A DNA stretch of 40,731 nt from positions 8,871 through 49,601 of the forward strand of contig NW_013657613.1 of NCBI RefSeq assembly GCF_000142905.1, read 5' to 3'. This document shows, in pieces, positions 1,488 through 38,200 of the stretch; position 1 is the stretch's first letter, and the number at the start of each line of letters is the position of its first letter. The notes below the pieces were generated by a model. The model was not told the DNA's origin. It worked only from the letters and a program-made list of their open reading frames with translations, and ran no database searches. A program made the translations under genes and the position numbers. This DNA comes from Thecamonas trahens ATCC 50062 (taxonomy: Eukaryota; Protista; Apusomonadida).

Positions 1488-4400
1488 CTACCANNNNNNN
1501 NNNNNNNNNNNNNNNNNNNNNNNNNNNNNNNNNNNNNNNNNNNNNNNNNNNNNNNNNNNNNNNNNNNNNNNNNNNNNNNNNNNNNNNNNNNNNNNNNNNN
1601 NNNNNNNNNNNNNNNNNNNNNNNNNNNNNNNNNNNNNNNNNNNNNNNNNNNNNNNNNNNNNNNNNNNNNNNNNNNNNNNNNNNNNNNNNNNNNNNNNNNN
1701 NNNNNNNNNNNNNNNNNNNNNNNNNNNNNNNNNNNNNNNNNNNNNNNNNNNNNNNNNNNNNNNNNNNNNNNNNNNNNNNNNNNNNNNNNNNNNNNNNNNN
1801 NNNNNNNNNNNNNNNNNNNNNNNNNNNNNNNNNNNNNNNNNNNNNNNNNNNNNNNNNNNNNNNNNNNNNNNNNNNNNNNNNNNNNNNNNNNNNNNNNNNN
1901 NNNNNNNNNNNNNNNNNNNNNNNNNNNNNNNNNNNNNNNNNNNNNNNNNNNNNNNNNNNNNNNNNNNNNNNNNNNNNNNNNNNNNNNNNNNNNNNNNNNN
2001 NNNNNNNNNNNNNNNNNNNNNNNNNNNNNNNNNNNNNNNNNNNNNNNNNNNNNNNNNNNNNNNNNNNNNNNNNNNNNNNNNNNNNNNNNNNNNNNNNNNN
2101 NNNNNNNNNNNNNNNNNNNNNNNNNNNNNNNNNNNNNNNNNNNNNNNNNNNNNNNNNNNNNNNNNNNNNNNNNNNNNNNNNNNNNNNNNNNNNNNNNNNN
2201 NNNNNNNNNNNNNNCCTCGCCCGCTATCCAATGCTCCGTGTCTTCGTCGACGTCGAGTCGCTTGACGGCATCCGCTGCGCCCATCCAGACGACTGTGCCG
2301 CCATCGTCGCTCGTTCCCGGCTTGTTCTTGTCCTCGTCACCAAGTACTTTGTCGTCACGCGCTACGCCATCGCCGAAGCCGACGCAGCGCTTGAGGGCGC
2401 TGCCAACGGCCGCAATGCCGTCTTCCCGGTCTTCATCGACAGCGACCTCTCGCTTGCTGAGCTTGGCCGACTGCACAGTGCCGCAGTCCGGCCCGCCGAC
2501 GACGAGTCCCGTGCCCGCTTCGATGTCGATCTCGCTGCAGCCAATGTCCGTGCCCAGGGCACTGACAGTTATCGCGCGCTGGTTGAAACTGCCTTCCTCG
2601 CTCGCCACAATCTTGACACCCACACCCATCCGCATCCGCTTGTCACCTTGATGGACACCTTCTTCACTTCGGGTGACAAGAAGCACCAGTACGACACTTG
2701 GCGCCATCATCTTCTCACGCACGATCGCAAGGCCCATCACGTCCGCACGGTCTACCGCCTCATGGACTGGGGTCTCGCCACTTACGACGCCCGCCGCATC
2801 TCCCAGGGTGCCGCCCTAGTTGACATTGCTCAGCGCTCCCTCGCCATCCTTGCCCGCACGATGCAGCTACCTTCCCGCATGCCGCCGCCACTCAATCCAC
2901 CCGAGTACCACCCGCTCCCTGACACTCGCGCTGCGGTCATTGACGCGCTTCTCGGTGCGAACAACGTCTCAGTCGTTGGTGTCAACGGGCTCGGTGGCGT
3001 CGGCAAGTCGTCACTCGCTGCCGATGTCGCCATCCATCCCGCCATCATCTCCGCCTTCTCCGTCTTCTGGCTCTCACTTGGTGAGGACAATACGTCCAAC
3101 CCAGCTCTTGCCAGCCGCATGTCTTACTTTCTCAAGCAGGGTCTGAGCTGCACAGTCGATACTAAGGCCAACCTCGATGACCTCCAACCCATTCTTGCTG
3201 CCAAAACCCGGGCCCTCGCCAATGCCAGGACTCGCATCCTGCTCATCCTCGATGATGTTTGGACCACCCGCCAGGCCTCCGTCTTCACCAACCACATCGC
3301 AGCCCCGCATGCCGTCCTCGTCACCTCGCGTAACGCCGCTGTTGCTACCAACACCGCCTCCTCCATCAAGCTTGGCACCTTTGGCCCGGACGACGCTGCT
3401 GTTGTCCTTCGCAACTACCTCGCCAAGGGCTCACCTGAGTGGGCAACTGCCCTCGCTCTCAACGATCCCCGCATCGTCTCCCTCGCGACCTTTTGCCATG
3501 GCCATGCCCTCGCCCTCGCCGTCCTTGGCTCGTCCATTTCTGGCGAGGCTGCACTTGACACCGCTGTTGCCAACTTTGATTCGGCCTCCAAACGTGCTTT
3601 CCACAAGCACCGCAAGTCAGAAGGCGGCACCGACGCCAAGTACGCCCACATCTTTGATATCATCACATGGACCCTCCGCAGCATCGACGACCTCGACCGT
3701 CCGATGGCACTCGCCATTTACGCCATGCTCGGCGTCTTTCCATCAGACGCGCCCATCGACGTCGCCAACTTCCGCGCCACAGTCCCAAAAGACGATATTG
3801 ACTTTGCTGCGGCCCTCGATGCCCTTGCCGATGCCTCTCTCCTGCGCGTCGTTGCCACGGATGGCGGCGCCATAACCGTAGTCGAGCTGCACGATCTGCA
3901 CCTCGAGTACATTCGCCATCGGCTTGAGGTGTGCTTTGACGACATCCCTTCCCTTCCTGCCCGTCACCTCGCCGTTGTCGCCGGGGTGCCTCCGCCTGGT
4001 GCCACGCCAGAGTCCGCTAAGGAGACCATGACCTCTGGCACTGCCTCCGATTGGATCGTCACCCGCGGTATTTCGCACCTGATTGCAGCCGGAGCGAACC
4101 ATGCTGCCGTTGCCGTTGCTCTCTCCTGGCCGTGGATGAAAGCCCGCGCAGACGACTCGCTTGGTGGCCTCCTCAATGATCTGCGTTGTGTTGTGCGCCT
4201 CGGCTGTGAAGGAGCCAAAGACGTTGACGAGGTCGAGCGTGCGCTGTCGCTCTCACGCGAGATCATTGAGAGCGGTACGTCGCACATCGAGACCGAGCTT
4301 GTCGCCCGACTTGCCTATGACAACGCGTCCAAAGCCGTGAAGGACCTGGTTGCTGCTGTGCGCGAAGATGCTTCGTCTAAGGCTCTCATTCCATCGAGAG

Positions 4401-7400
4401 CCGTGGACCCTGTCGCGCATCGTGGTGCTGAGCGCTTTCGCTTTGATGGCAAGTATGCCAATGTCATCAACATCGGTGGCTCACTGGTTGCTGGTGGATG
4501 TAAGGATAATGTGGACGTACTTGACGTGCAAACTGGTGAACGCGTGGAGGTGCTGGAGGGCCACACTAGCATGGTACAGGGTGTGATTGCGCTGCCGAGT
4601 GCGGATGGCCAGCTGCCTGTCCTGGTCTCGTGGTCGTGGGACGACACGATCCGGGTGTGGCATGCTGCGGACGACGGGACGGGCGCCATGCGGTACACCG
4701 CGGACAGTGCCTCCTGTGAGGTGCTGGAGGGCCACACCAGCGATGTGNNNNNNNNNNNNNNNNNNNNNNNNNNNNNNNNNNNNNNNNNNNNNNNNNNNNN
4801 NNNNNNNNNNNNNNNNNNNNNNNNNNNNNNNNNNNNNNNNNNNNNNNNNNNNNNNNCCATGCGGTACACCGCGGACAGTGCCTCCTGTGAGGTGCTGGAG
4901 GGCCACACCAGCGATGTGCGGGGTGTGATTGCGCTGCCGAGTGCGGACAGCCAGCTGCCTGTCCTGGTCTCGTGGTCAGGCGACAAGACGGGACGGGTGT
5001 GGCATCCTGCGGACGACGGGACGGGCGCCATGCGGTACACCGCGGACAGTGCCTCCTGTGAGGTGCTGGAGGGCCACATCTACGATGTGCAGGGTGTGAT
5101 TGCGCTGCCGAGTGCGGCTGGCCAGCTGCCTGTCCTGGTCTCGTGGTCAGACGACAAGACGATCAGGGTGTGGCATGCTGCAGACGACGGGACGGGCGCC
5201 ATGCGGTNNNNNNNNNNNNNNNNNNNNNNNNNNNNNNNNNNNNNNNNNNNNNNNNNNNNNNNNNNNNNNNNNNNNNNNNNNNNNNNNNNNNNNNNNNNNN
5301 NNNNNNNGTGCCTCCTGTGAGGTGCTGGAGGGCCACACCGACGATGTGAAGGGTGTGATTGCGCTGCCGAGTGCGGATGGCCAGCTGCCTGTCCTGGTCT
5401 CGTGGGCGTGGGACAAGACGATCCGGGTGTGGCATGCTGCGGACGACGGGACGGGCGCCATGCGGTACACCGCGGACAGCGCCTCCTGTGAGGTGCTGGA
5501 GGGCCACACCGACGATGTGGAGGGTGTGATTGCGCTGCCGAGTGCGGATGGCCAGCTGCCTGTCCTGGTCTCGTGGTCGTGGACAACACGATACCGGGTG
5601 GTGGCATGCTGCAGACGNNNNNNNNNNNNNNNNNNNNNNNNNNNNNNNNNNNNNNNNNNNNNNNNNNNNNNNNNNNNNNNNNNNNNNNNNNNNNNNNNNN
5701 NNNNNNNNNNNNNNNNNNNNNNNNNNNNTGCCTCGTCCTGGTCTCGTGGTCGGGGGACAAGACGATCCGGGTGTGGCATGCTGCGGACGACGGGACGGGC
5801 GCCATGCGGTACACCGCGGACAGGGCCTTCTGTGAGGTGCTGGAGGGCCACACCAGCCTTGTGCGGGGTGTGATTGCGCTGCCGAGTGCGGATGGCCAGC
5901 TGCCTGTCCTGGTCTCGTGGTCGAGAGACAGGACGATCCGGGTGTGGCATGCTGCGGACGACGGGATGGGCGCCATGCGGTACACCGCGGACAGTGCCTC
6001 CTGTGAGGTGCTGGAGGGCCACACCGACGATGTGCATGGTGTGATTGCGCTGCCGAGTGCGGATGGCCAGCTGCCTGTCCTGGTCTCGTGGTCAGACGAC
6101 AAGACGATCAGGGTGTGGCATGCTGCAGACGACGGGACGGGCGCCATGCGGTACACCGTGGACAGTGCCTCCTGTGAGGTGCTCGAGGGCCACACCTACA
6201 GTGTGCAAGGTGTGATTGCGCTGCCGAGTGCGGATGGCCAGCTGCCTGTCCTGGTCTCGTGGTCGCTCGACGGGACGATCCGGGTGTGGCATGCTGCGGA
6301 CGACGGGACGGGCGCCATGCGGTACACCGCGGACAGTGCCTCCTGTGAGGTGCTGGAGGGCCACACCAAGTATGTGCGGGGTGTGATTGCGCTGCCGAGT
6401 GCGGATGGCCAGCTGCCTGTCCTGGTCTCGTGGTCGGAGGACAACACGATCCGGGTGTGGCATGCTGCGGACGACGGGACGGGCGCCATGCGCTACACCG
6501 CGGACAATGCCTCCTGTGAGGTGCTGGAGGGCCACACCAGCAGGATGCTGGGTGTGATTGCGCTGCCGAGTGCGGATGGCCAGCTGCCCGTCCTGGTCTC
6601 GTGGTCGTGGGACTACACGATCCGGGTGTGGCATGCTGCGGACGACGGGACGCGCGCCATGCGGTACACTGCAGACAATGCCTCCTGTGAGGTGCTGGAG
6701 GGCCACACCAAGTATGTGAAGGGTGTGATTGCGCTGACAAGTGCGGATGGCCAGCTGCCTGTCCTGGTCTCGTGGTCGGAGGACAACACGATCCGGGTGT
6801 GGCATCCTGCGGACGACGGGACGGGCGCCATGCGGTACACCGCGGACAATGCCTCCTGTGAGGTGCTGGAGGGCCACACCTACAGTGTGCGGGGTGTGAT
6901 TGCGCTGCCGAGTGCGGATGGCCAGCTGTCTGTCCTTGTCTCGTGGTCAAGAGACAACAACACGATTCGGGTGTGGCATGCTGCCGACAACGGGACGGGC
7001 GCCATGCGGTTCACCGCGGACAGTGCCTCCTGTGAGGTGCTGGAGGGCCACACCAGCAGGGTGCGGGGTGTGATTGCGCTGCCGAGTGCGGATGGCCAGC
7101 TGTCTGTCCTTGTCTCGTGGTCAAGAGACAACAACACGATTCGGGTGTGGCATGCTGCCGACAACGGGACGGGCGCCATGCGGTTCACCGCGGACAGTGC
7201 CTCCTGTGAGGTGCTGGAGGGCCACACCGAGTATGTGGAGGGTGTGATTGCGCTGCCGAGTGCGGATGGCCAGCTACCCGTCCTGGTCTCCCGCTCATAC
7301 TCCGACGAGACGTTCGAGTGGTACCCCTCCCCCACCGGCTACACCCTCCACCCCCGCCACCCTTCCTCCTTCGGGCTCCACGCCCGCCGCTCCACCTCCA

Positions 7401-7537
7401 CCCACCCACGCAACAACTCCACTCGCATCACCATTGCCAACCACACCGGCCTCTCCATCCCCCACCCCTCCGACCCCAACCGCCTCCTCGCTGTCGTCTC
7501 CAACTGCCCCCCCATCATCCTCCGCCGCCACCCATAA
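1484..7537 (+). CDS. NLR-like STAND protein: TIR domain + NB-ARC (Apaf-1-like) + WD40 repeat array; 5' part hidden in gap 1494-2214
   Basis: TIR-like segment LRVFVDVESL...SRLVLVLVTKYFVVTRYAIAE...VFPVFID (~2230-2440). Walker A GLGGVGKS (~2987-3010), Walker B LLILDDVW (~3240-3262), VLVTSRN, GLPL-equivalent CHGHALAL, MHD-equivalent LHDLH (~3887-3901). Apaf-1-like helical segment ISHLIAAG...LSWPWMKAR, then GH...W repeats from 4547 to ~7290 and stop TAA at 7535-7537. The ATG at 1484 is only a candidate start. Frame changes inside the array coincide with N gaps or gap-adjacent sequence. Confidence 0.88.
4547..7290 (+). repeat. Coding tandem array of 171-nt (57-aa) WD40 units, at least 16 copies
   Basis: Unit EVLEGHTxxVxGVIALPSADGQLPVLVSWSxDxTIRVWHAADDGTGAMRYTADSASC. 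Starts at 4547, 4718, 4889, 5060, 5319, 5490, ~5663 (start in gap), 5834, 6005, 6176, 6347, 6518, 6689, 6860, 7034 and 7208 (last one truncated). The units at 6860 and 7034 carry a 3-nt insertion. Three N gaps make the true copy number uncertain. Confidence 0.97.
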
Positions 7538-8580
7538 CACCCACCGCCTTTTCTCCCCCGAGCACCGCGCCCGCATCCTCGCCGCCGCCAGCACATCCGC
7601 AGCCTCCTGCGCCATGGGCCTCACCAGCGGATCGACCGACCAACACCGCTGGATGAGTCCGCGCAGCTGCTCCGGCGCACCCGCCATCGCACTAGCAGCG
7701 TTGCTGGTGAGGACCTGACGGCCGACCCCCATGGCATTGCTGCCATCAAACGCCGGCGCCCACATGAGCATCTCGTAGAGGAGCGTTCCAAAGGTGAACA
7801 TGTCGCCCTCGGGGCCCTCGTCGGCTCCGCGCAGCTGCTCCGGTGCCATGTACCCCACCGATGGCACCACCGCCATCGTCCCCAGGTTGCTCTTGATGAC
7901 CATTCGTCCGCTTTTGTGGTCCACCACCACGTCGTGCCCGCCGCCCGTGGTCGAGTGGACCTCGGCGAGCGCACGCGCCAGCGCCAGCCCGATGCTCAGC
8001 GCCCACACGCGGTCGAGGCCCGAGCCCGAGCTCAGCTAACAGCGGTGTCCGAGCCCGGTCAGCCCGCTTCTGCTCCCGCTGCAACGACCGATCGTGCGGC
8101 CGCCCACGAGAAAGGCCTCGGCAAGGATCTCCTCCAGCGACCCACAGTCGATGCGCGCGTAGATTACATGTGGCAGCAAGACGTTGACCATCACCCGCGT
8201 GTACCCGCTGAGCGCCATCGGCCCGCCAGCCTTCATCACTGCCTCCATCTCGCGCCGCGTGGCGACGAGGCCGCCCCCGCGACGATCGCGCAGTAGCAAG
8301 CTCACTGAGGGTAGCCGCCAGACTCGTCTGCTCGCCGTTGTACGGGCCGTAGGCAACAGCCATGTGACGACGACATAGACGACGCGGCGGGTGTAGAGGT
8401 CGCGGACTCGTCGTCAATCTCATCCGGCCGCTCGCCATCGATGACGGTCTCGTCGATGCCGCCGCTGACAACAACGCTGCCGGCGTTCACAGCAAGGCCG
8501 TTGTTGGAGCATCCGGTCCACTGATCGGCCGGCAGAACCGCAGTCGCGAGGGCTGATGCAGCTAAGCAGCTCATCGACAT
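7295..8580 (-). CDS. Degenerate protein-kinase-fold gene (TKL-like pseudokinase or pseudogene)
   Basis: C-lobe motifs GYMAPEQL, DMFTFGTLLYEML and LIQRCWSVDPLVRP; hinge IDCGSLEEIL; alphaC-like RREMEAVM. No HRD or DFG is visible. The in-frame TAG at 8036-8038 can be removed as a 72-nt phase-0 intron (GTGGGC at 8107, CTGAC branch-like motif, TTAG at 8036). The 5' end needs a frameshift, and both ends are uncertain. Confidence 0.6.
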
Positions 8581-8837
8581 CGGCAGTGCACCCACACATC
8601 CCTTGGCCGGTGCGAGTTGGTGCTTGGACTCATTGACTCAAAGGGCAAAAAATAGTGTAAAAATAGAACCGTAGCTGTCAAACACCCTCCTCGTCTCGCA
8701 CGCATGTTGCCCGGCACGTGATGCCCGTTTCACTCCAACCATCCCTCCTCCTCAACAGCCACCCACATCACTCCAGGCGCACCACCACCATCACTACCAC
8801 CACCACTCACCATCGCCGCCATACACCCATACCCACC

Positions 8838-27400: not shown

Positions 27401-29293
27401 GAGGACGCGCCGGGCCGGCAACAAAGTTGGCGGCGGCGGCAGCGTACCGGGCGCGGCACATCGAGGCGTGGGTGACGGCATCGATGAGATGATGAGTCTC
27501 TCCGGGCGCGGCGCGCCAGCGGCCAGGACGCAGAGCACGGTCGAGAGAGGTGAGGAGGTCGAGCGGGAGGCTGGCAAACACTGGCGGTTGCCGGCAGTCA
27601 TGAGCGCATCGACCTCGGTGAGGAGAACGCTGACAGGATCGATGCCTGCGTAGAGGGTTGCGTCATCAGTGCGGAAACGTGCAAGAAGCCAGGGCTGAGC
27701 CATGGCCGAGGCCGGCCGGCACGGGTGCGCGCGGTTGAGCCGAGCCTGAACAAGACGCTGGGCCAAGGCCTCGTCGTCACCAATGAGAGAGTACGGCGAA
27801 CCGTCGGGCTTTCGCTCGTTGGCAAGAAGGAGTTTGAGACGCGGGCGTTGCCAGGCCGAGATGACGACGTAGCTTGTAGTGGCGTCGATGATTTCGGCCT
27901 CATCGGCTTCGGAGAGTGCACCAGGTAGGCTTCGGTAGAGAGCCATCAAAACCTTCCGCGGCTTGCGGACGTCGTCCCATGCAACGCCGGAAACAGAGGG
28001 CGAGAACGCGGCCATGCGGCGGTGGCAGAGCCTTGCTAGATTGGAGCGTGTGAGGGAGGACGGGATGATGGTGGTATCGAATACTCTCGTCCCCGGGCTG
28101 TGTGCGGAGGCGGCGTTGACAGTGGCTGCAACCGGACGCGGCCGAGTGGCCGTCAAAGTGGTGGGTGGCGGCGCGCTCACCTCCATCGGCGCGACGACTT
28201 GATCGCGAGGCGGTGGCTCTGCGGCGGCGCAACAAACGCGGCCAGCCTTCCTGCCGGGCAACATAGACTCGTTGGACCACGGCAGTGCCTCGCGCTGCTG
28301 GCAGAAGGCAGGGTAGAGGATGTGGAGGCTGAGCTTGTTCATGGCATCCTGAGTCGGATGCCATTCCGGCCACCAAGGGACCGAGAAGCCACGTGTCAGC
28401 TCAAGTGTCTCTGCTTCGGTCGGCTCCGCCGCCATGACACGGTGGATGAAGGCACTGTCAACGGCAGATGTGCTGCCGTTGCCCCCGGAGAACTGGGCCT
28501 CGACGTACTCGATCTTGAGCCGCAACTGTGCCAAAAGTCTAGCCTCGGACAACCTTTGGGCTTTGTGCCTAGCCGTGAATGGTGCCCCACTTGTTGCGGC
28601 CAACGGGAGAGGGCTCTGCAGGAGCCGAGCCTCGATTGTCGAGGCGCGCTCCACAGCCGGCTCGCTGGCCTGGTCTACGCGAGTCGACGACCGCGGCGGA
28701 CGACCTACTGCTGGCCGAGACCGATGGTTCTTTGCCTCCCAATCAGCCAGCTTCTGCCTTGCCTCTGAAGACGCTTTTGCCAGGATAGCCTGTGCCCTCT
28801 TGCTTGCGGCGGTGGCAGCCTGAGCCTTGTTCTGGGTTTGTATCTGGTTCTTGTCGGTGATGATGTGGCTCTTGTCGTCGATGGCATGGTTCCTGTCGTC
28901 GATGGCATGGTTCCTGTCGTCGATGGCATGGTTCCTGTCGTCGATGGCATGGTTCCTGTCGTCGATGGCATGGTTCTTGATGTGGTTCTTGTCGTCGATT
29001 GAGCCGATCCTGTTGGCGATGGCGTGGACCTCGTCCACAGGTGGCCCATGCTCACACTTGCCAACGGCCGAGTCTGTAGCGCTTGCCATTGCCAACGCCA
29101 CCTCGGAACGAGCAAACAACGCCTCGAGATCCAAATCAGTGAGCGGATCACAAAGAGAGACAAAGCCATCAGCCTCCGTCTGTCCACCACCTCGTTCCAC
29201 CGCCACCCGTTGCACCAGCTCCTTTGCCTCGGTCACTCCCGAGCTCGCTGGCGAGACCAGTCGCGAGAGGACATCAGTCTGCGCCTCAGCCAT
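24422..29293 (-). CDS. Large F-box protein with C-terminal C2H2-type zinc finger and basic tail
   Basis: ATG at 29293 (MAEAQ). F-box SAVPNELIVYLFSFLSSASYRALASTCRRLWQLAHD (~27270-27380) and CPHCYWSY...FVAHAVAKH (~24645-24720). Built from ORFs 26924-29308, 27039-27581, 24358-27459 and 24422-24715 via three inferred one-base frameshifts (~27584, ~27413, ~24599), ending RKARRKARRKARRKSKNKGKKKGKGK...RGC*. Confidence 0.68.
28873..28999 (-). repeat. Coding 21-nt tandem repeat (DDRNHAI, ~5 copies plus degenerate copy)
   Basis: Plus-strand unit TGTCGTCGATGGCATGGTTCC repeated in tandem. Confidence 0.92.
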
Positions 29294-29613: not shown

Positions 29614-31257
29614 ATGAGCATGGCCCTGCCGATTGTGCATGCGGACGTTGTGCGTGCGGGGAGTCAGCACAATGTGCACTCGCTTGCAGCAGCTGTGGAA
29701 GGGACGGGAGTGCTCATGGCTGAGCTCCATGGCCTCTGCTGGGTTGGGTATGGTGCTCGTGGTGGGGCAGGGCGGAGTGAGCTCGTTCATCTTGCTGATC
29801 ATGACATCATTGCCGCTGCACTCGTACACCAGGCAGCGGAGTATGCCCTCGTTGCTCTCGCTCTCGTTCCCTCTCGTCCCTTTGATGACCGCGCCTTTGA
29901 CGACAAATCCGCTCAATCGCCGCAGCTATCGCCACAGTCGGCCTCCCCTGCCGCTGCTGAGTCGACCAGAGCTGCCGCTGCTGAGTCGACCAGAGCTGCC
30001 GCTGCGTCATCGACCAGAGCTGCCGCTGCGTCATCGACCAGAGCCGCCGCTGCGTCATCGACCAGAGCTGCCGCTGCGTCATCGACCAGAGCCGCCGCTG
30101 CGTCATCGACCAGAGCCGCCGCTGCGTCATCGGGCCTGCCCAGAACGACGCCATCAACATCGACTTTGTCGTCGACCTCGCCCAAAGCTACCACGTCGAC
30201 CTCGGGCAGCGGGGCGCTTCTCTCGGTACCGGTCTCGTCGACGACCTTGTCGTGGGCGGTGGGCTCACTCTCGTTTGTGGTCGTTCCGCCGGCAGATCGA
30301 CCGACGGCCTTTGATGCAGTCGTGGTAGCCTCGTTCCCGCTGCCATATCTTCCGCTCTGTCTCATTCCACCGCAGCAGCTTGTCGCTGCGTACCCGCAGC
30401 TGGCGGTGGCGGTATCGGGCTCGGACGGCGTCATCCACGCCTATGCGGTAGGTGACGGCGACGGGTGGCGACTGCCCGACGACCTGGCATCGCTTCCGGA
30501 GCAACTGCCGGTCATCGAGCTCGCAGCCGACGCGCATCCGTTTGCCGCCCTCAACCGGGCCGGCGATGCGGCGGCGTCAGTTGTTGTGGCAGACATAGCG
30601 CCGTCACCCGATGGCACCCTCCTCGCGGTCGGCTTTGACGACGGCCGCGTCCAGGTCGGGTACGTCGACGCGCTCGCCGCGGGCAGCCCGCCGCAGTCGG
30701 GGTGGATCGACGGCCCGGTCTCTGCGCTCTCCTTTTCGCGGCCGCCTCTCTCGCCGGGCGACGCCGCGCTGCTTGCGGCGGCACACCCGGACGTGGCAGA
30801 CCACATTGCGGCCCTTGCCGCCACCGCGCCCGACCTCTATCTCGTTGCCGGCGGGTCGGCCGGCTCGGTCACGGTCTTTCCGCACCCGCTCGTTACCCTC
30901 GACGCCCGCTTCCCGCTCGCCCTCCCGCCGCTCCACGAGTACAACTCGATTACCGGCCTCGGCTTTGCCGATCTCACTGCGTCGGGTGTCAATGAGCTGG
31001 TGGTCTCGACCTATGAGAAGGAGCTATGGGTGTATTCGGTGTCGGGGAGCGCGGTCGCCGGCGATCTCGACTTTGAGCTCGCCTCACGCCTCCGCCTCTC
31101 GCGACCGGTCCTCTCCTTTGCCTTTGTCGACCTCTCCGCCGACGGCTCGCCCGAGTTTGTCGTAGTCACCCGCGCCGCCGTCCACGTCTTTGTCCACCTT
31201 CCGCGAGTGGGTGCGGGAGCCGGACCAGCCGAGGACGCGCCTGCTAGCGAGAGCTAG
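29614..31257 (+). CDS. KPTN: Kaptin (KICSTOR subunit) homolog
   Basis: Motifs occur in the order I recall for kaptin: SQHNVHSLA, VSGSDGVIHAY, AVGFDDGRVQVGYVD, DGPVSAL, YNSITGLGFADLTASGVNELVVSTYEKELWVY, SRPVLSFAFVDLSADGSPEFVVVTRAAVHVFVH. Uninterrupted 547-aa ORF. Confidence 0.85.
   Translation: MSMALPIVHADVVRAGSQHNVHSLAAAVEGTGVLMAELHGLCWVGYGARGGAGRSELVHLADHDIIAAALVHQAAEYALVALALVPSRPFDDRAFDDKSAQSPQLSPQSASPAAAESTRAAAAESTRAAAASSTRAAAASSTRAAAASSTRAAAASSTRAAAASSTRAAAASSGLPRTTPSTSTLSSTSPKATTSTSGSGALLSVPVSSTTLSWAVGSLSFVVVPPADRPTAFDAVVVASFPLPYLPLCLIPPQQLVAAYPQLAVAVSGSDGVIHAYAVGDGDGWRLPDDLASLPEQLPVIELAADAHPFAALNRAGDAAASVVVADIAPSPDGTLLAVGFDDGRVQVGYVDALAAGSPPQSGWIDGPVSALSFSRPPLSPGDAALLAAAHPDVADHIAALAATAPDLYLVAGGSAGSVTVFPHPLVTLDARFPLALPPLHEYNSITGLGFADLTASGVNELVVSTYEKELWVYSVSGSAVAGDLDFELASRLRLSRPVLSFAFVDLSADGSPEFVVVTRAAVHVFVHLPRVGAGAGPAEDAPASES
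29950..30131 (+). repeat. Coding 24-nt tandem repeat (AAA[E/S]STRA, ~7.5 copies) inside KPTN
   Basis: Unit GCCGCTGCGTCATCGACCAGAGCY; the first two copies have GCTGAGTCG. Confidence 0.93.
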
Positions 31258-34158: not shown

Positions 34159-34605
34159 GGGTGCTCATCATTAATCGTTGGGGTATTGATTTTGGGTTGA
34201 GGGTGCTCATCATTAATCGTTGGGGTATTGATTTTGGGTTGAGGGTGTCGTCATTAATCGTTGGGGTATTGATTTTGGGTTGAGGGTGCTCATCATTAAT
34301 CGTTGGGGTATTGATTTTGGGTTGAGGGTGTCGTCATTAATCGTTGGGGTATTGATTTTGGGTTGAGGGTGTCGTCATTAATCGTTGGGGTATTGATTTT
34401 GGGTTGAGGGTGTCGTCATTAATCGTTGGGGTATTGATTTTGGGTTGAGGGTGCTCATCATTAATCGTTGGGGTATTGATTTTGGGTTGAGGGTGTCGTC
34501 ATTAATCGTTGGGGTATTGATTTTGGGTTGAGGGTGTCGTCATTAATCGTTGGGGTATTGATTTTGGGTTGAGGGTGCTCATCATTAATCGTTGGGGTAT
34601 TGATT
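34159..34605. repeat. Intergenic 41/42-nt tandem array, ~10.8 copies, two unit types
   Basis: A = GGGTGCTCATCATTAATCGTTGGGGTATTGATTTTGGGTTGA (42 nt). B = GGGTGTCGTCATTAATCGTTGGGGTATTGATTTTGGGTTGA (41 nt). Order A A B A B B B A B B A(partial). Confidence 0.97.
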
Positions 34606-35297: not shown

Positions 35298-38200
35298 GGT
35301 GTGGGTGTGGGTGTGGGTGTGGGTGTGGGTGTGGGTGTGGGTGTGGGTGTGGGTGTGGGTGTGGGTGTGGGTGTGGGTGTGGGTGTCTAAGAAGCCATGT
35401 AGCCCCCCTCCCCCCCTGTACCACCACCACCACCACTCACCACCATACCACCATATCTCCTCCTTCTCCTCCTGCTGCTGGTACTGCTGCTGATACTGCT
35501 GCTGGTACTGCTGCTGATACTGCTGCTGATACTGCTGCTGATACTGCTGCTGGTACTGCTGCTGATACTGCTGCTGGTACTGCTGCTGATACTGCTGCTG
35601 GTACTGCTGCTGGTACTGCTGCTGATACTGCTGCTGATACTGCTGCTGGTACTGCTGCTGATACTGCTGCTGATACTGCTGCTGATACTGCTGCTGGTAC
35701 TGCTGCTGATACTGCTGCTGGTACTGCTGCTGATACTGCTGCTGATACTGCTGCTGATACTGCTGCTGATACTGCTGCTGATACTGCTGCTGATACTGCT
35801 GCTGATACTGCTGCTGATACTGCTGCTGATACTGCTGCTGATACTGCTGCTGATACTGCTGCTGATACTGCTGCTGGTACTGCTGCTGGTACTGCTGCTG
35901 GTACTGCTGCTGATACTGCTGCTGATACTGCTGCTGATACTGCTGCTGGTACTGCTGCTGGTACTGCTGCTGGTACTGCTGCTGATACTGCTGCTGATAC
36001 TGCTGCTGGTATCTCTTGTCATGCAATGGTGGACCACCACTACCACTACTATCCGCTCCCTCATCCACGTACTCTCCTTCTCCTCCTCTGTTGGCCCACA
36101 GCTGTTCCTCTACATGCAGCAGTTTGCGCGGAAGCTTCTGGATCGGACGCAGGCGCTCGAGTCCGAGGTGGATGGCCTGGTCAATGCGGCGGCGGCGGCG
36201 GAAGTCGACGTTCGCAACACCTTTAACGAGTTTGACCTGCTCTCGGCGAGCCAGTTCATCGAGAACCGGGTGTATGTCGACGACACGTACATGGATGAGG
36301 CCGAGAGCAGCAACGGCAAGGCCGGCGTGGCTGACGAGCCGCCGCTGGATCCGGAGATCGAGGCTGCGCTAGAGAACGATCCGGAGCTGCAAGAGGCCCG
36401 CGAGCGTGAGCTGGAGGCCAAGCTGGTGCCCAAGCTCAAGGCTGCGCTCGAGTACGGCCTCGTCCTGCTCGACGACCTGTTTGACGACGACGACGTCGAC
36501 GAGGCCTTTCAGCCGGCGGCCGACATGGGTGCGGCCGACGTGGTCACCGGCAAAGAGTACATTGCCGGGCCGGCCGACATGCTGGCTGGCAAGCGGTTCA
36601 AGCCGTCAGAGCGCTACGCGCAGCGCCCGCTGCCATACATCATCGGCACCGCGTCGTTTATGGACGACGAGACCTGCGGCCTGCTCCACGAAGAGTACTC
36701 CGAGTCGGTCTCCGAGTCCATCTATGAGGATGAAGACTTTGAGGACTACTCGGGCGAGTACTCATACCCACCCATTGTCTACTCGGACGACGACCCGTTC
36801 GCGTACTCGTACGACGACGTCGCAGACCCGCTGCGCAAGGCCAGCGCCGCCGACCGTGCCGGCTCGGCCTCGCCGGCGTACTCGGACGCGTACTCGGACG
36901 ATGGCGGAGGCAAGGGCAAGGACAAGAAGAAGAAGAAGAAGAAGAAGAAGAAGAAGAAGAAGAAAAAGAAGAAGAAGAAGGACAAGGGCAAGGGCAAGGA
37001 CAAAGGCAAGGGTAAGGACGAGGTCAACGATGCGCCGGCTACTGACGGTACCGGAGCCAGCGGCGCTGATGCACCTAACGATGCGGTCGCCGCCAAGGGT
37101 GCACCAGGCACCGGCCTCATGGACGACGACGACCTCGGGCTCTCGGGCTTTGGCGGCGGCTCGACCGGTAATGCCGGCGGTGTCCCTGCCGGCGCCAACG
37201 GCTCGGCCGTCGACGGTCTCTTTGCCGGCCTCGACGACGGGACAACCGGTTCGGGCGCGACGCTCGGCGGCGGTGACCTGTTCTCGGACCCGTTCACCAC
37301 CGCGCCGCCGTCGTCCAAGGCGCCTGCCCCGCCGCCGCCGCCGTCGTCGGGCCTCCCGCCAGTCGGCATCGGCGACCTTCCGCCGGTCTTCCCCGCCGGC
37401 GGTCTTCCGCCCGTCATGGGCGCCGACGGTCAGCCGGTTGCGGCCGCGCCGCCTGCCGCGCCGCCTGCCGCGCCTCCTGCCGCACCGCCTGCTGCACCGC
37501 CGGCACCCTCGCTTTTCCCGCAGCCACCTGCAGCCGCCCCTGCCGCGCCCAAGGCGTCCACGGCACTCTTTGATGGCGCCGACGACATCTTTGGTGACGA
37601 CGATGCCCTGTTTGGCGACGTGGGCGCCGACAATGCGTTCCCTGCCGCCGCGCCTGCTGCGCCCGCTGCGCCCGCTGCGCCTGCCGCGCCTGCTGCGTCT
37701 GCAGTCGACGACATGTTTGGCGACGACCTGTTTGCTGACGACGGCCTGTTTGCTGATGATCCACCCGCCGCACGTACATCCGCACCGGCTGCTCCTCCGG
37801 CACCGGCCGCGCCCGCCGCGCCCGCCGCGCCCGCCGCGCCCGCCGCGCCTGCCGCGCCTGCCGTGCCTGCCGCGCCTGCTGCGCCTGCTGCGCCCGAGCC
37901 GGAGCCAAAGCCGGAGCCGGAGCCGGAGCCCAAGAAGGCAGCCGCTTCGGCGTTTGGTGACGACCTCGACCTGTTTGGGCCCGAGTCAGCATCGATCTTG
38001 AGCGGGACGGGCTCAGGCGCCAAGACCGGCTCGCTGTGGGAGGGCGACGACGCCGATCTGTTCGGCGCCGGCTTTGGCACCTCCAAGTCGGAGAGCAAGG
38101 CTGCGGCTGCTGCAACGGCCCCGATCCCGTCGCTTGACGCCGACAACCTGTTCCTCGACGACGACGACGACATCATGGGTTTCTCTGCCGCCAAGAAGAC

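Follow-up and report, generated by a model that had tools for sequence, protein, structure and literature searches.

Homogenised WD40 units with five hypervariable codons in a putative TIR/NB-ARC receptor family at scaffold ends of Thecamonas trahens

Highly internally conserved (HIC) repeats bearing hypervariable sites are an established feature of fungal NOD-like receptors (NLRs) (PMC1805685; PMC4986451). In Podospora, Paoletti et al. (2007) found codons 7, 9, 25 and 27 of the WD40 repeat to be strongly positively selected; the pairs flank consensus codons under purifying selection (8 and 26), one pair in the D-A loop and the other in the B-C turn, both at the top surface of the propeller (PMC1805685). 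Across 69 Podospora units there were 55 combinations, and the repeat logic serves allorecognition (PMC1805685). Homogenised, hypervariable-repeat NLRs, already known from filamentous fungi, have lately been reported more widely (PMC13449251; PMC5587647). Hu et al. (2017) collected 305 'highly repetitive' WD40 proteins, 40 of them from protists, with diversity at hotspot sites (PMC5587647), and according to Ament-Velasquez and Saupe (2026) HIC repeats go with NLR architectures in all domains of life (PMC13449251). Here we describe the WD40 array of an NLR-like gene, at positions 4544-7290 on the + strand of a 40,731-nt stretch of contig NW_013657613.1 of Thecamonas trahens ATCC 50062; this whole stretch is termed the window in what follows. 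Thecamonas is an apusomonad, and apusomonads are unicellular bacterivores, the sister group of animals plus fungi.

The array probably acts as sensor domain in one of the proteins of a Thecamonas-specific TIR/NB-ARC/WD40 family of the STAND (signal transduction ATPases with numerous domains), NLR-like type, in which the units are homogenised, five top-face codons are diversified and the role would be of an immune type. The family is best filed as HIC-repeat NLRs in a new lineage, with a notable scaffold-end organisation.

In three blocks split by N gaps (4857-5207, 5308-5617 and 5729-7290; 91-92% matches, scores 497-2456), Tandem Repeats Finder detects a 171-nt period. The array holds 15 'EVLEGH' anchors, that is, at least 14-15 tandem units, spaced 171 nt apart except that the last two full units are spaced 174 nt, with one extra Asn codon each. 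Each unit is a 57-residue WD40 repeat in a single reading frame, and this frame is open in every assembled unit of the window. A reading of the DNA made beforehand without database searches (the sequence-only reading) had called the 57-residue unit unusually long; long it is, though still ordinary for WD40. Mean pairwise identity among the nine complete window units is 91.1% in DNA and 87.4% in protein, and the lower protein value already hints at surplus amino-acid changes.

With codons numbered from the Cys of the unit, codons 9, 10, 12, 32 and 34 carry five or six amino acids apiece in the 13-15 window units available for each, as against three at most for every other codon. These are codons 8, 9, 11, 31 and 33 of the sequence-only reading, which counted from Glu and had proposed near-identical 171-nt units varying mainly at these five positions. 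That description holds, and the variants it listed are reproduced in full: SM, SD, YD, DD, SL, YS, KY, SR and EY for GHT-xx; Q, R, K, E, H and L for V-x-G; and WDD, GDK, DDK, WDK, RDR, LDG, EDN, WDY and RDNN for SWS-x-D-x. In some pairs of units almost every difference is at these codons: between units 13 and 14 (174 nt each) there are 3 differing nt, all within codons 9-10, and between units 7 and 9 there are 12, with 10 among the 15 hypervariable nucleotides. Secondary variable positions are codon 41 (A/P), codon 55 (S/R/N/G/T) and codon 56 (A/D/V), at 6464-6466 and 6506-6511 in unit 10; they stand where the long C-D loop begins and ends.

For measures of selection, 118 complete 171-nt units (stop-free by selection) were taken from the window and 18 other loci, giving 111 distinct sequences. 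Over the 118 units, amino-acid entropy reaches 2.6-3.2 bits at the five codons; no other codon exceeds 1.8 bits, codon 55 coming closest. By the Nei-Gojobori method, nonsynonymous divergence (dN) at the five codons is 1.04 in the family and 1.19 in the window, against a synonymous divergence (dS) of 0.097 and 0.087, respectively, in the other 52 codons; those 52 codons have a dN/dS of 0.36-0.66. A likelihood site test was run with a GY94-type model on a FastTree topology, the synonymous rate being fixed at its array-wide value, as in codeml site models. Family-wide (111 distinct units), omega is 2.5-7.9 at the five codons, with p from 5e-7 to 2e-32; for 11 window units alone it is 5-16, with p<=5e-4, which withstands Bonferroni correction for 57 codons. 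Besides the five, only codons 41 and 55 exceed an omega of 1 family-wide (2.5-3.2), the rest being at or below 1. The nonsynonymous excess expected at the five codons is accordingly found by pairwise dN/dS and by fixed-rate omega, and by a test with a free synonymous rate at codon 10 only.

The residues were placed in the propeller by DSSP strand assignments on two AlphaFold models (Table 1) together with blade topology. The model of window units 7-15 can be called confident (pLDDT 81.6, pTM 0.81); that of the whole 13-unit domain of a paralogue, L038, has a moderate pLDDT of 65. Codons 9-10 are the last of the D-A loop and codon 12 stands second in strand A; Asp33 of the B-C turn has codon 32 on one side and codon 34 on the other. 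When a blade has four antiparallel strands, its D-A and B-C connections share one face, the top. The models thereby place the five hypervariable residues on the top face of the predicted propeller, in two loops per blade, in agreement with the prior expectation that all five would share one face. Alignment to beta'-COP and RACK1 confirms the identity of Val11 and Asp33 as the consensus Val and Asp. The structures that Foldseek retrieves are WD40 propellers, with eight blades in several cases (ODA16, Rsa4/NLE1, Tako8, Cdc4); the top match for both models is 2YMU, a 'highly repetitive propeller'; the 13-unit model also matched double-propeller proteins, Apaf-1 among them.

Like the Podospora HNWD/NWD proteins (HET-E, HET-D, HET-R), the Thecamonas family has near-identical WD40 units spread across a multigene family, with unit number varying between members. 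Codons 10 and 12 flank Val11 and codons 32 and 34 flank Asp33, so that four of the five sites are positionally equivalent to fungal codons 7/9 and 25/27; the suggestion that the HNWD diversification logic acts at equivalent blade positions is borne out to this extent. Site combinations are many in both, with 102 in 118 Thecamonas units and 55 in 69 Podospora units. Unlike Podospora, Thecamonas has an additional, fifth variable codon (codon 9). Its unit has 57 residues rather than 42, with a longer A-B loop and the extra C-D loop hairpin; NB-ARC stands in place of the NACHT domain of HNWD and TIR in place of HET. It is moreover a unicellular flagellate without hyphal fusion, and all its loci lie at scaffold ends. 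We know of no repeat-induced point mutation (RIP), a fungal process, outside fungi.

Concerted evolution holds the units close to identity, both inside a locus and across the 16 or more loci, as units are duplicated, lost and exchanged. Unit-to-unit dS is ∼0.10 when all pairs within and between loci are pooled, and the NB-ARC and linker of the paralogues have a dS of 0.19-0.21 (dN ∼0.10, dN/dS ∼0.5). Since unit dS is about half NB-ARC dS, units must have been homogenised, exchanged or renewed after the paralogues split; without this, units that are not orthologous would be at least as old as the gene duplication. The mean distance at non-hypervariable positions is 0.0625 within loci versus 0.0688 between loci, and the nearest neighbour of a unit lies in its own locus in 32% of cases versus 5.7% expected. 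First units are mutual nearest relatives across loci, an edge effect. Unit number per paralogue ranges from 4 to 15. Recombination between units also reassorts the 5' and 3' variable blocks, the 102 distinct five-site combinations being made from 64 5' blocks and 38 3' blocks.

The most divergent paralogue is L047 (G000:C17:1-8500; units at ∼4700-5460), with an NB-ARC of ∼84% identity. Outside the hypervariable positions its one clean pair of 171-nt units is ∼22% apart, and the distance of its units from the main pool is ∼16%. It looks like a copy that has dropped out of the homogenisation pool.

Within the window, NB-ARC scores 63.3 bits against a cut-off of 23.5, and NACHT 18.2 bits, below its cut-off of 26.7, which upholds the call of NB-ARC rather than NACHT made from sequence alone. 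Pfam WD40 scores 114.7 bits. The TIR domain proposed at the same time as effector is significant in a paralogue and stays below threshold in the window itself: TIR_2 scores 21.9 bits there against a cut-off of 28, because the domain is truncated by the 721-N gap, which takes its first half. In the gap-free paralogue L038 a single 1622-aa open reading frame (ORF) encodes TIR_2 (38.5 bits), NB-ARC (53.6 bits) and an array of 13 units. Pfam finds no HET, CARD or LRR match in either the window or L038, and no match in the window linker (3557..4543).

The N-terminal part is not uniform across the family. Over the TIR and linker (window 2216-2870 against L038:1623-2414) protein identity is 45% overall, with a ∼40-residue indel and no match at the DNA level, whereas the P-loop end of the compared stretch (window 2216-3100) is nearly identical to L038, and the upstream block and NB-ARC region of the two are 89-93% identical. 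At the DNA level the TIR type of the window is common only to the C17 copy. A divergent TIR between well-conserved flanks indicates that the paralogues are mosaics with at least two N-terminal types.

Public annotation gives little sign of this architecture. The gene model in the window (P0007) is named 'hypothetical protein, variant / NB-ARC domain-containing protein', and paralogues are labelled 'WD repeat protein' or 'ribosome assembly protein 4', the latter because of a structural match to Rsa4. Such annotations mask an NLR family of at least 16 genes.

The window gene has two of the three parts expected of a STAND or NLR-like protein, namely a nucleotide-binding oligomerisation domain (NOD) ATPase with P-loop and Walker B motifs and a C-terminal repeat domain forming a superstructure; for the third, an N-terminal effector or signalling domain, the candidate is the truncated TIR, which scores above its cut-off in L038 only. 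HIC-repeat NLRs are recognised by repeats more than ∼85% identical over at least 100 residues, or with a similarity of at least 0.7 (Dyrka 2014; Ament-Velasquez and Saupe 2026). At 87.4% protein identity the window units lie above the first of these values. The few hypervariable positions on a putative binding face that go with the class are present and under diversifying selection, with the caveat that the free-rate test singles out only codon 10 of the five, and concerted evolution, repeat exchange and varying repeat number are all seen across the paralogues. Repeat identity above 0.7, a STAND ATPase, a putative N-terminal domain of cell-death type and diversity at predicted hotspots are also what the gene has in common with non-fungal HIC NLRs and 'Highly-Repetitive' WD40 proteins.

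Three narrower classes fit less well. Membership of the fungal HNWD group was rejected, NACHT being below its cut-off, HET absent and TIR present instead. Apaf-1 and Dark likewise have an NB-ARC followed by a long WD40 region forming tandem propellers; unlike Apaf-1, the Thecamonas effector is TIR and not CARD, and Apaf-1 repeats are divergent rather than hypervariable. CED-4 has only the CARD and NB-ARC parts in common with Apaf-1 and Dark. The nearest solved NB-ARC domains are those of plant NRC1/2/3, Apaf-1 giving no match at E<=0.01, and with no CARD either, membership of the Apaf-1-type apoptosome group was also rejected. With plant TIR-type NLRs (TNLs) the gene shares the N-terminal TIR and NB-ARC module; a WD40 sensor in place of the LRR sensor, with no LRR match, sets it outside that class too.

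Among 1.84 billion representative proteins, only four match the NB-ARC and linker at E<=1e-30, all of them from Thecamonas, and the next match has 33% identity. The nearest proteins from elsewhere are metagenomic, apart from one Pirellulales protein, and include a TIR-NB-ARC-LRR (P0016, 33% identity) and a TIR-NB-ARC-WD40 (P0020); such proteins have the same module, at no more than 33% identity to Thecamonas. One metagenome contig is far closer. On contig L050 (Ga0208059_1003796, 1914 nt) stand the final WD40 unit, the C-terminal tail and, downstream, the kinase-like gene; its closest reference paralogue is C101, at 95.3% identity, and it is identical to none, so a related strain or species in nature carries the family.

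A literature search found no paper on this Thecamonas family, and none pairing Thecamonas with NB-ARC and WD40 or with NLR and TIR; Thecamonas and NB-ARC come up together only in the paper on the Acanthamoeba genome. In Zmasek and Godzik (2012) Thecamonas is merely a sampled genome. The accessible portions of the two surveys of repetitive repeats (PMC13449251; PMC5587647) name neither Thecamonas nor apusomonads, and describe neither a scaffold-end distribution nor a genome-wide repeat pool for a protist.

The sequence-only reading had suggested a search of the genome for other loci with the 171-nt unit, and such loci are there. The unit occurs at ∼90% identity on 19 scaffolds of the 28.7-Mb assembly, and at least 16 anchored loci draw on a common repeat pool. 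Sixteen loci are anchored in scaffolds of at least 49 kb, the others lying on four small unplaced scaffolds of 4-9 kb. None of the 16 anchored arrays is more than 15 kb from a scaffold end, and two extend right up to it. Strand follows position without exception, + where an array is near the start of its scaffold and - where it is near the other end; every gene therefore reads inward from the scaffold end.

Five N-free paralogues are open from the N-terminus through the array, with 9 (L034), 14 (L035), 7 (L037), 13 (L038) and 4 (L047) unit anchors; the translation of L047 shows five units, the first being too diverged for the anchor pattern. On four scaffolds, those of L031 (C97), L041 (C101), L032 (C123) and L049 (C125), there are runs of units identical at non-hypervariable positions to units on other scaffolds, e.g. 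those of L042 (C73). Units 12-14 of L031 match units 3-5 of L041, and units 6-7 of L032 match units 2-3 of L042. The matching small-scaffold runs are redundant assembly pieces, haplotigs or very recent duplications, and the true locus count is for this reason nearer 16 than 19.

The repeated segment is not limited to the gene. The whole of it (∼1.5 kb upstream, NB-ARC with linker, array, and 0.5-1.3 kb downstream) recurs at 86-96% identity, as a block of ∼9 kb that stands at scaffold ends together with other repeated sequence. The upstream block (1-1493) has over 30 copies elsewhere, almost all of them close to scaffold ends and with the same strand rule as the arrays (+ at starts, - at ends), and looks like a chromosome-end-specific repeat. 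It was seen on scaffolds C87, C62, C81, C96, C109, C61, C36, C102, C74, C21, C44, C24, C6 and others, and many such ends are without an NLR copy. TTAGGG telomere arrays stand at the starts of scaffolds C1 and C2; the examined scaffold ends that carry the family or the adjoining upstream block have no TTAGGG repeats. A subtelomeric location of the family is likely.

In the mechanism that we propose, by analogy with other STAND proteins and NLRs, the top face of the propeller would bind a ligand, either non-self or modified self. Binding would free the NB-ARC switch and allow oligomerisation, and clustering of the TIR domains might in turn lead to signalling or NAD+ consumption and so to defence or cell death. 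A repertoire of specificities would be kept up by diversifying selection acting on the ligand face. A bolder and doubtful extension is that the receptor repertoire sits at chromosome ends, its genes all oriented alike within a common repeated block, that ectopic recombination between ends continually reshuffles a genome-wide WD40 pool, and that the whole arose independently of the fungal HIC NLRs, in the lineage that is sister to opisthokonts. End-based reshuffling of this kind would liken the family to the var and VSG subtelomeric diversity generators, here for the intracellular immune receptors of a free-living protist.

The array displays the fungal logic, at the same WD40 blade positions, in an apusomonad, with TIR and NB-ARC in place of HET and NACHT. 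This argues that repeat shuffling with diversifying selection is a general and repeatedly evolved route to intracellular receptor repertoires, one that requires neither multicellular life nor fusion of hyphae. That all copies stand strictly at scaffold ends and in one common orientation hints at a link, open to test, between recombination at chromosome ends and the diversification of the receptors.

Several points weigh against the immune-sensor reading. Thecamonas is a free-living bacterivore, and we know of neither pathogens nor cell-fusion incompatibility described for it. With three gaps in its array and damage at one contig edge, the copy in the window may not be intact. Under a free synonymous rate per codon (as in fixed effects likelihood, FEL), codon 10 alone of the five is significant, codons 41, 54, 55 and 57 are significant as well, and at codon 32 alpha exceeds beta. 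When the tree for this test is built from the non-hypervariable codons, likelihoods are undefined (NaN) at four of the five hypervariable codons. The weak free-rate result probably arises from single-step codon models, which route differences of 2-3 nt through synonymous intermediates. Lastly, a single tree for recombining units inflates the inferred count of changes.

Of the other explanations, the one that survives best accepts the same molecular picture with a non-immune role, either allorecognition (a mating-type-like discrimination) or a family that spreads among chromosome ends without benefit to the host. The ∼9 kb block repeated along with other scaffold-end sequence and the fairly high NB-ARC dN/dS between paralogues (∼0.5) would suit the second, and Podospora uses the same repeat logic for the first (PMC1805685). 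Five complete copies nonetheless have intact reading frames. Cell-fusion incompatibility has, to our knowledge, not been described in apusomonads, which tells against the first. The TIR/NB-ARC/repeat architecture is by contrast a hallmark of plant and bacterial defence receptors (PMC13449251), and on balance we consider a non-immune role unlikely.

It is less probable still that the array reflects recent amplification under relaxed constraint, with young copies in which five unconstrained surface positions drift neutrally. The near-equality of within-locus and between-locus distances is as expected after a recent burst, and the free-rate site test is non-significant at four of the five codons. 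Neutral sites cannot outpace synonymous ones, however, and here dN is ∼1.0 against a dS of ∼0.09, with an omega of 2.5-16 under fixed dS. Moreover, the halved synonymous divergence of the units relative to NB-ARC requires homogenisation after the split, and this would erase neutral variants too.

A mechanism that rewrites the codons, whether programmed or targeted mutagenesis or templated micro-conversion, could itself yield a nonsynonymous excess, selection aside. Differences are indeed often 2-3 nt per codon, some near-identical units differ in a 6-nt patch only, and the 5' and 3' blocks reassort. Yet the variation keeps to codon boundaries and skips Val11 and Asp33: per-base diversity runs from 0.25 to 0.71 in the five codons and does not exceed 0.15 in Val11 and Asp33 or 0.22 in the other adjacent codons (8, 13, 31 and 35). 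The third base of codon 10 is T wherever the amino acid permits, and unit pairs with the same amino acid rarely differ in codon (4-20% at hypervariable sites versus 7% in the remainder of the unit). Codon-bounded variation with no clear rise in synonymous change argues for selection on amino acids and against a local mutational hotspot, and the patches are copies of blocks in other units, explicable by ordinary gene conversion. We accordingly hold directed rewriting to be very improbable. The mutagenesis of diversity-generating retroelements (DGRs) is adenine-specific, and a DGR-like process was rejected, all four bases varying in a codon-delimited manner.

That the variation is an assembly artefact, reads of many paralogous loci having been collapsed or chimerically joined so that differences between loci pose as differences between units, is hardly credible: the window array does have three gaps, duplicated 62-nt flanks at one of them and indel errors at one contig edge, the unit is common to at least 16 loci at ∼90% identity, and small unplaced scaffolds duplicate unit runs of larger ones at non-hypervariable positions, but all five N-free paralogues (L034, L035, L037, L038 and L047) show the same hypervariable-codon pattern in uninterrupted frames, the 118 retained units comprise 111 distinct sequences, and chimeric joins reorder units and cannot make codon-delimited variation. 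The gap-free open copies mean that the pattern is not an assembly artefact, a possibility that the sequence-only reading had listed among its refuting outcomes; unit order in the window could still be one.

For the window the consequence of the three N gaps is that unit number and order are uncertain, the codon-specific pattern being unaffected. Gap 1 may be a contig overlap, in which case there is one unit fewer, or it may hide 109+171n nt. The frame shift at gap 2 is artificial, because the true missing length must be 12+171n nt and not 100. The features of the locus are collected in Table 1.

Table 1. Features of the Thecamonas trahens locus, in window positions, and of the WD40 unit, in codons numbered from its Cys
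Feature	Position	Strand	Remarks
Upstream block of repeated scaffold-end segment	1..1493	+	89-95% identical at >30 other genomic places
Assembly gap, 721 N	1494..2214	.	Hides start codon and first half of TIR domain (by comparison with gap-free paralogue L038)
TIR domain, C-terminal part	2297..2506	+	TIR_2 profile positions 45-116, 21.9 bits
NB-ARC domain	2930..3556	+	63.3 bits; P-loop GGVGKS, Walker B LLILDD in translation
Linker, NB-ARC match to array	3557..4543	+	LHD (MHD-like) motif; ends in degenerate first blade from ∼4430
WD40 array	4544..7290	+	15 GH anchors; units 171 nt, two of 174 nt; final unit truncated
Gap 1, 109 N	4748..4856	.	62 nt on both flanks identical; in phase as written
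Gap 2, 100 N (conventional length)	5208..5307	.	Flanks demand 12+171n nt
Poor contig edge	5580..5617 (approx.)	+	Three indels versus unit consensus, breaking frame beside gap 3
Gap 3, 111 N	5618..5728	.	Missing length must be 110+171n nt
5' hypervariable block, unit 10 example	6368..6379	+	Codons 9-10 = 6368-6373, codon 12 = 6377-6379; flank conserved Val11
3' hypervariable block, unit 10 example	6437..6445	+	Codon 32 = 6437-6439, codon 34 = 6443-6445; flank conserved Asp33
C-terminal tail to stop codon	7291..7537	+	Same end in L038 and a metagenome contig; overlaps antisense kinase-like ORF
Strand D	codons 1-5		DSSP
D-A loop	codons 6-10		DSSP
Strand A	codons 11-17		DSSP
Strand B	codons 26-31		DSSP
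B-C turn	codons 32-34		DSSP
Strand C	codons 35-39		DSSP
Extra hairpin in long C-D loop	codons not assigned		DSSP

The antisense ORF that overlaps the NLR tail (7295-8636, - strand) encodes a kinase-like C-lobe and forms part of the repeated segment, recurring at 80-95% identity downstream of many paralogues and on metagenome contig L050. The window also holds other strong tandem repeats, unrelated to the WD40 array, at 28845-28976, 29948-30132, 34159-34605 (41-nt units, ∼10.8 copies) and 35472-36008 (12-nt units, ∼45 copies).

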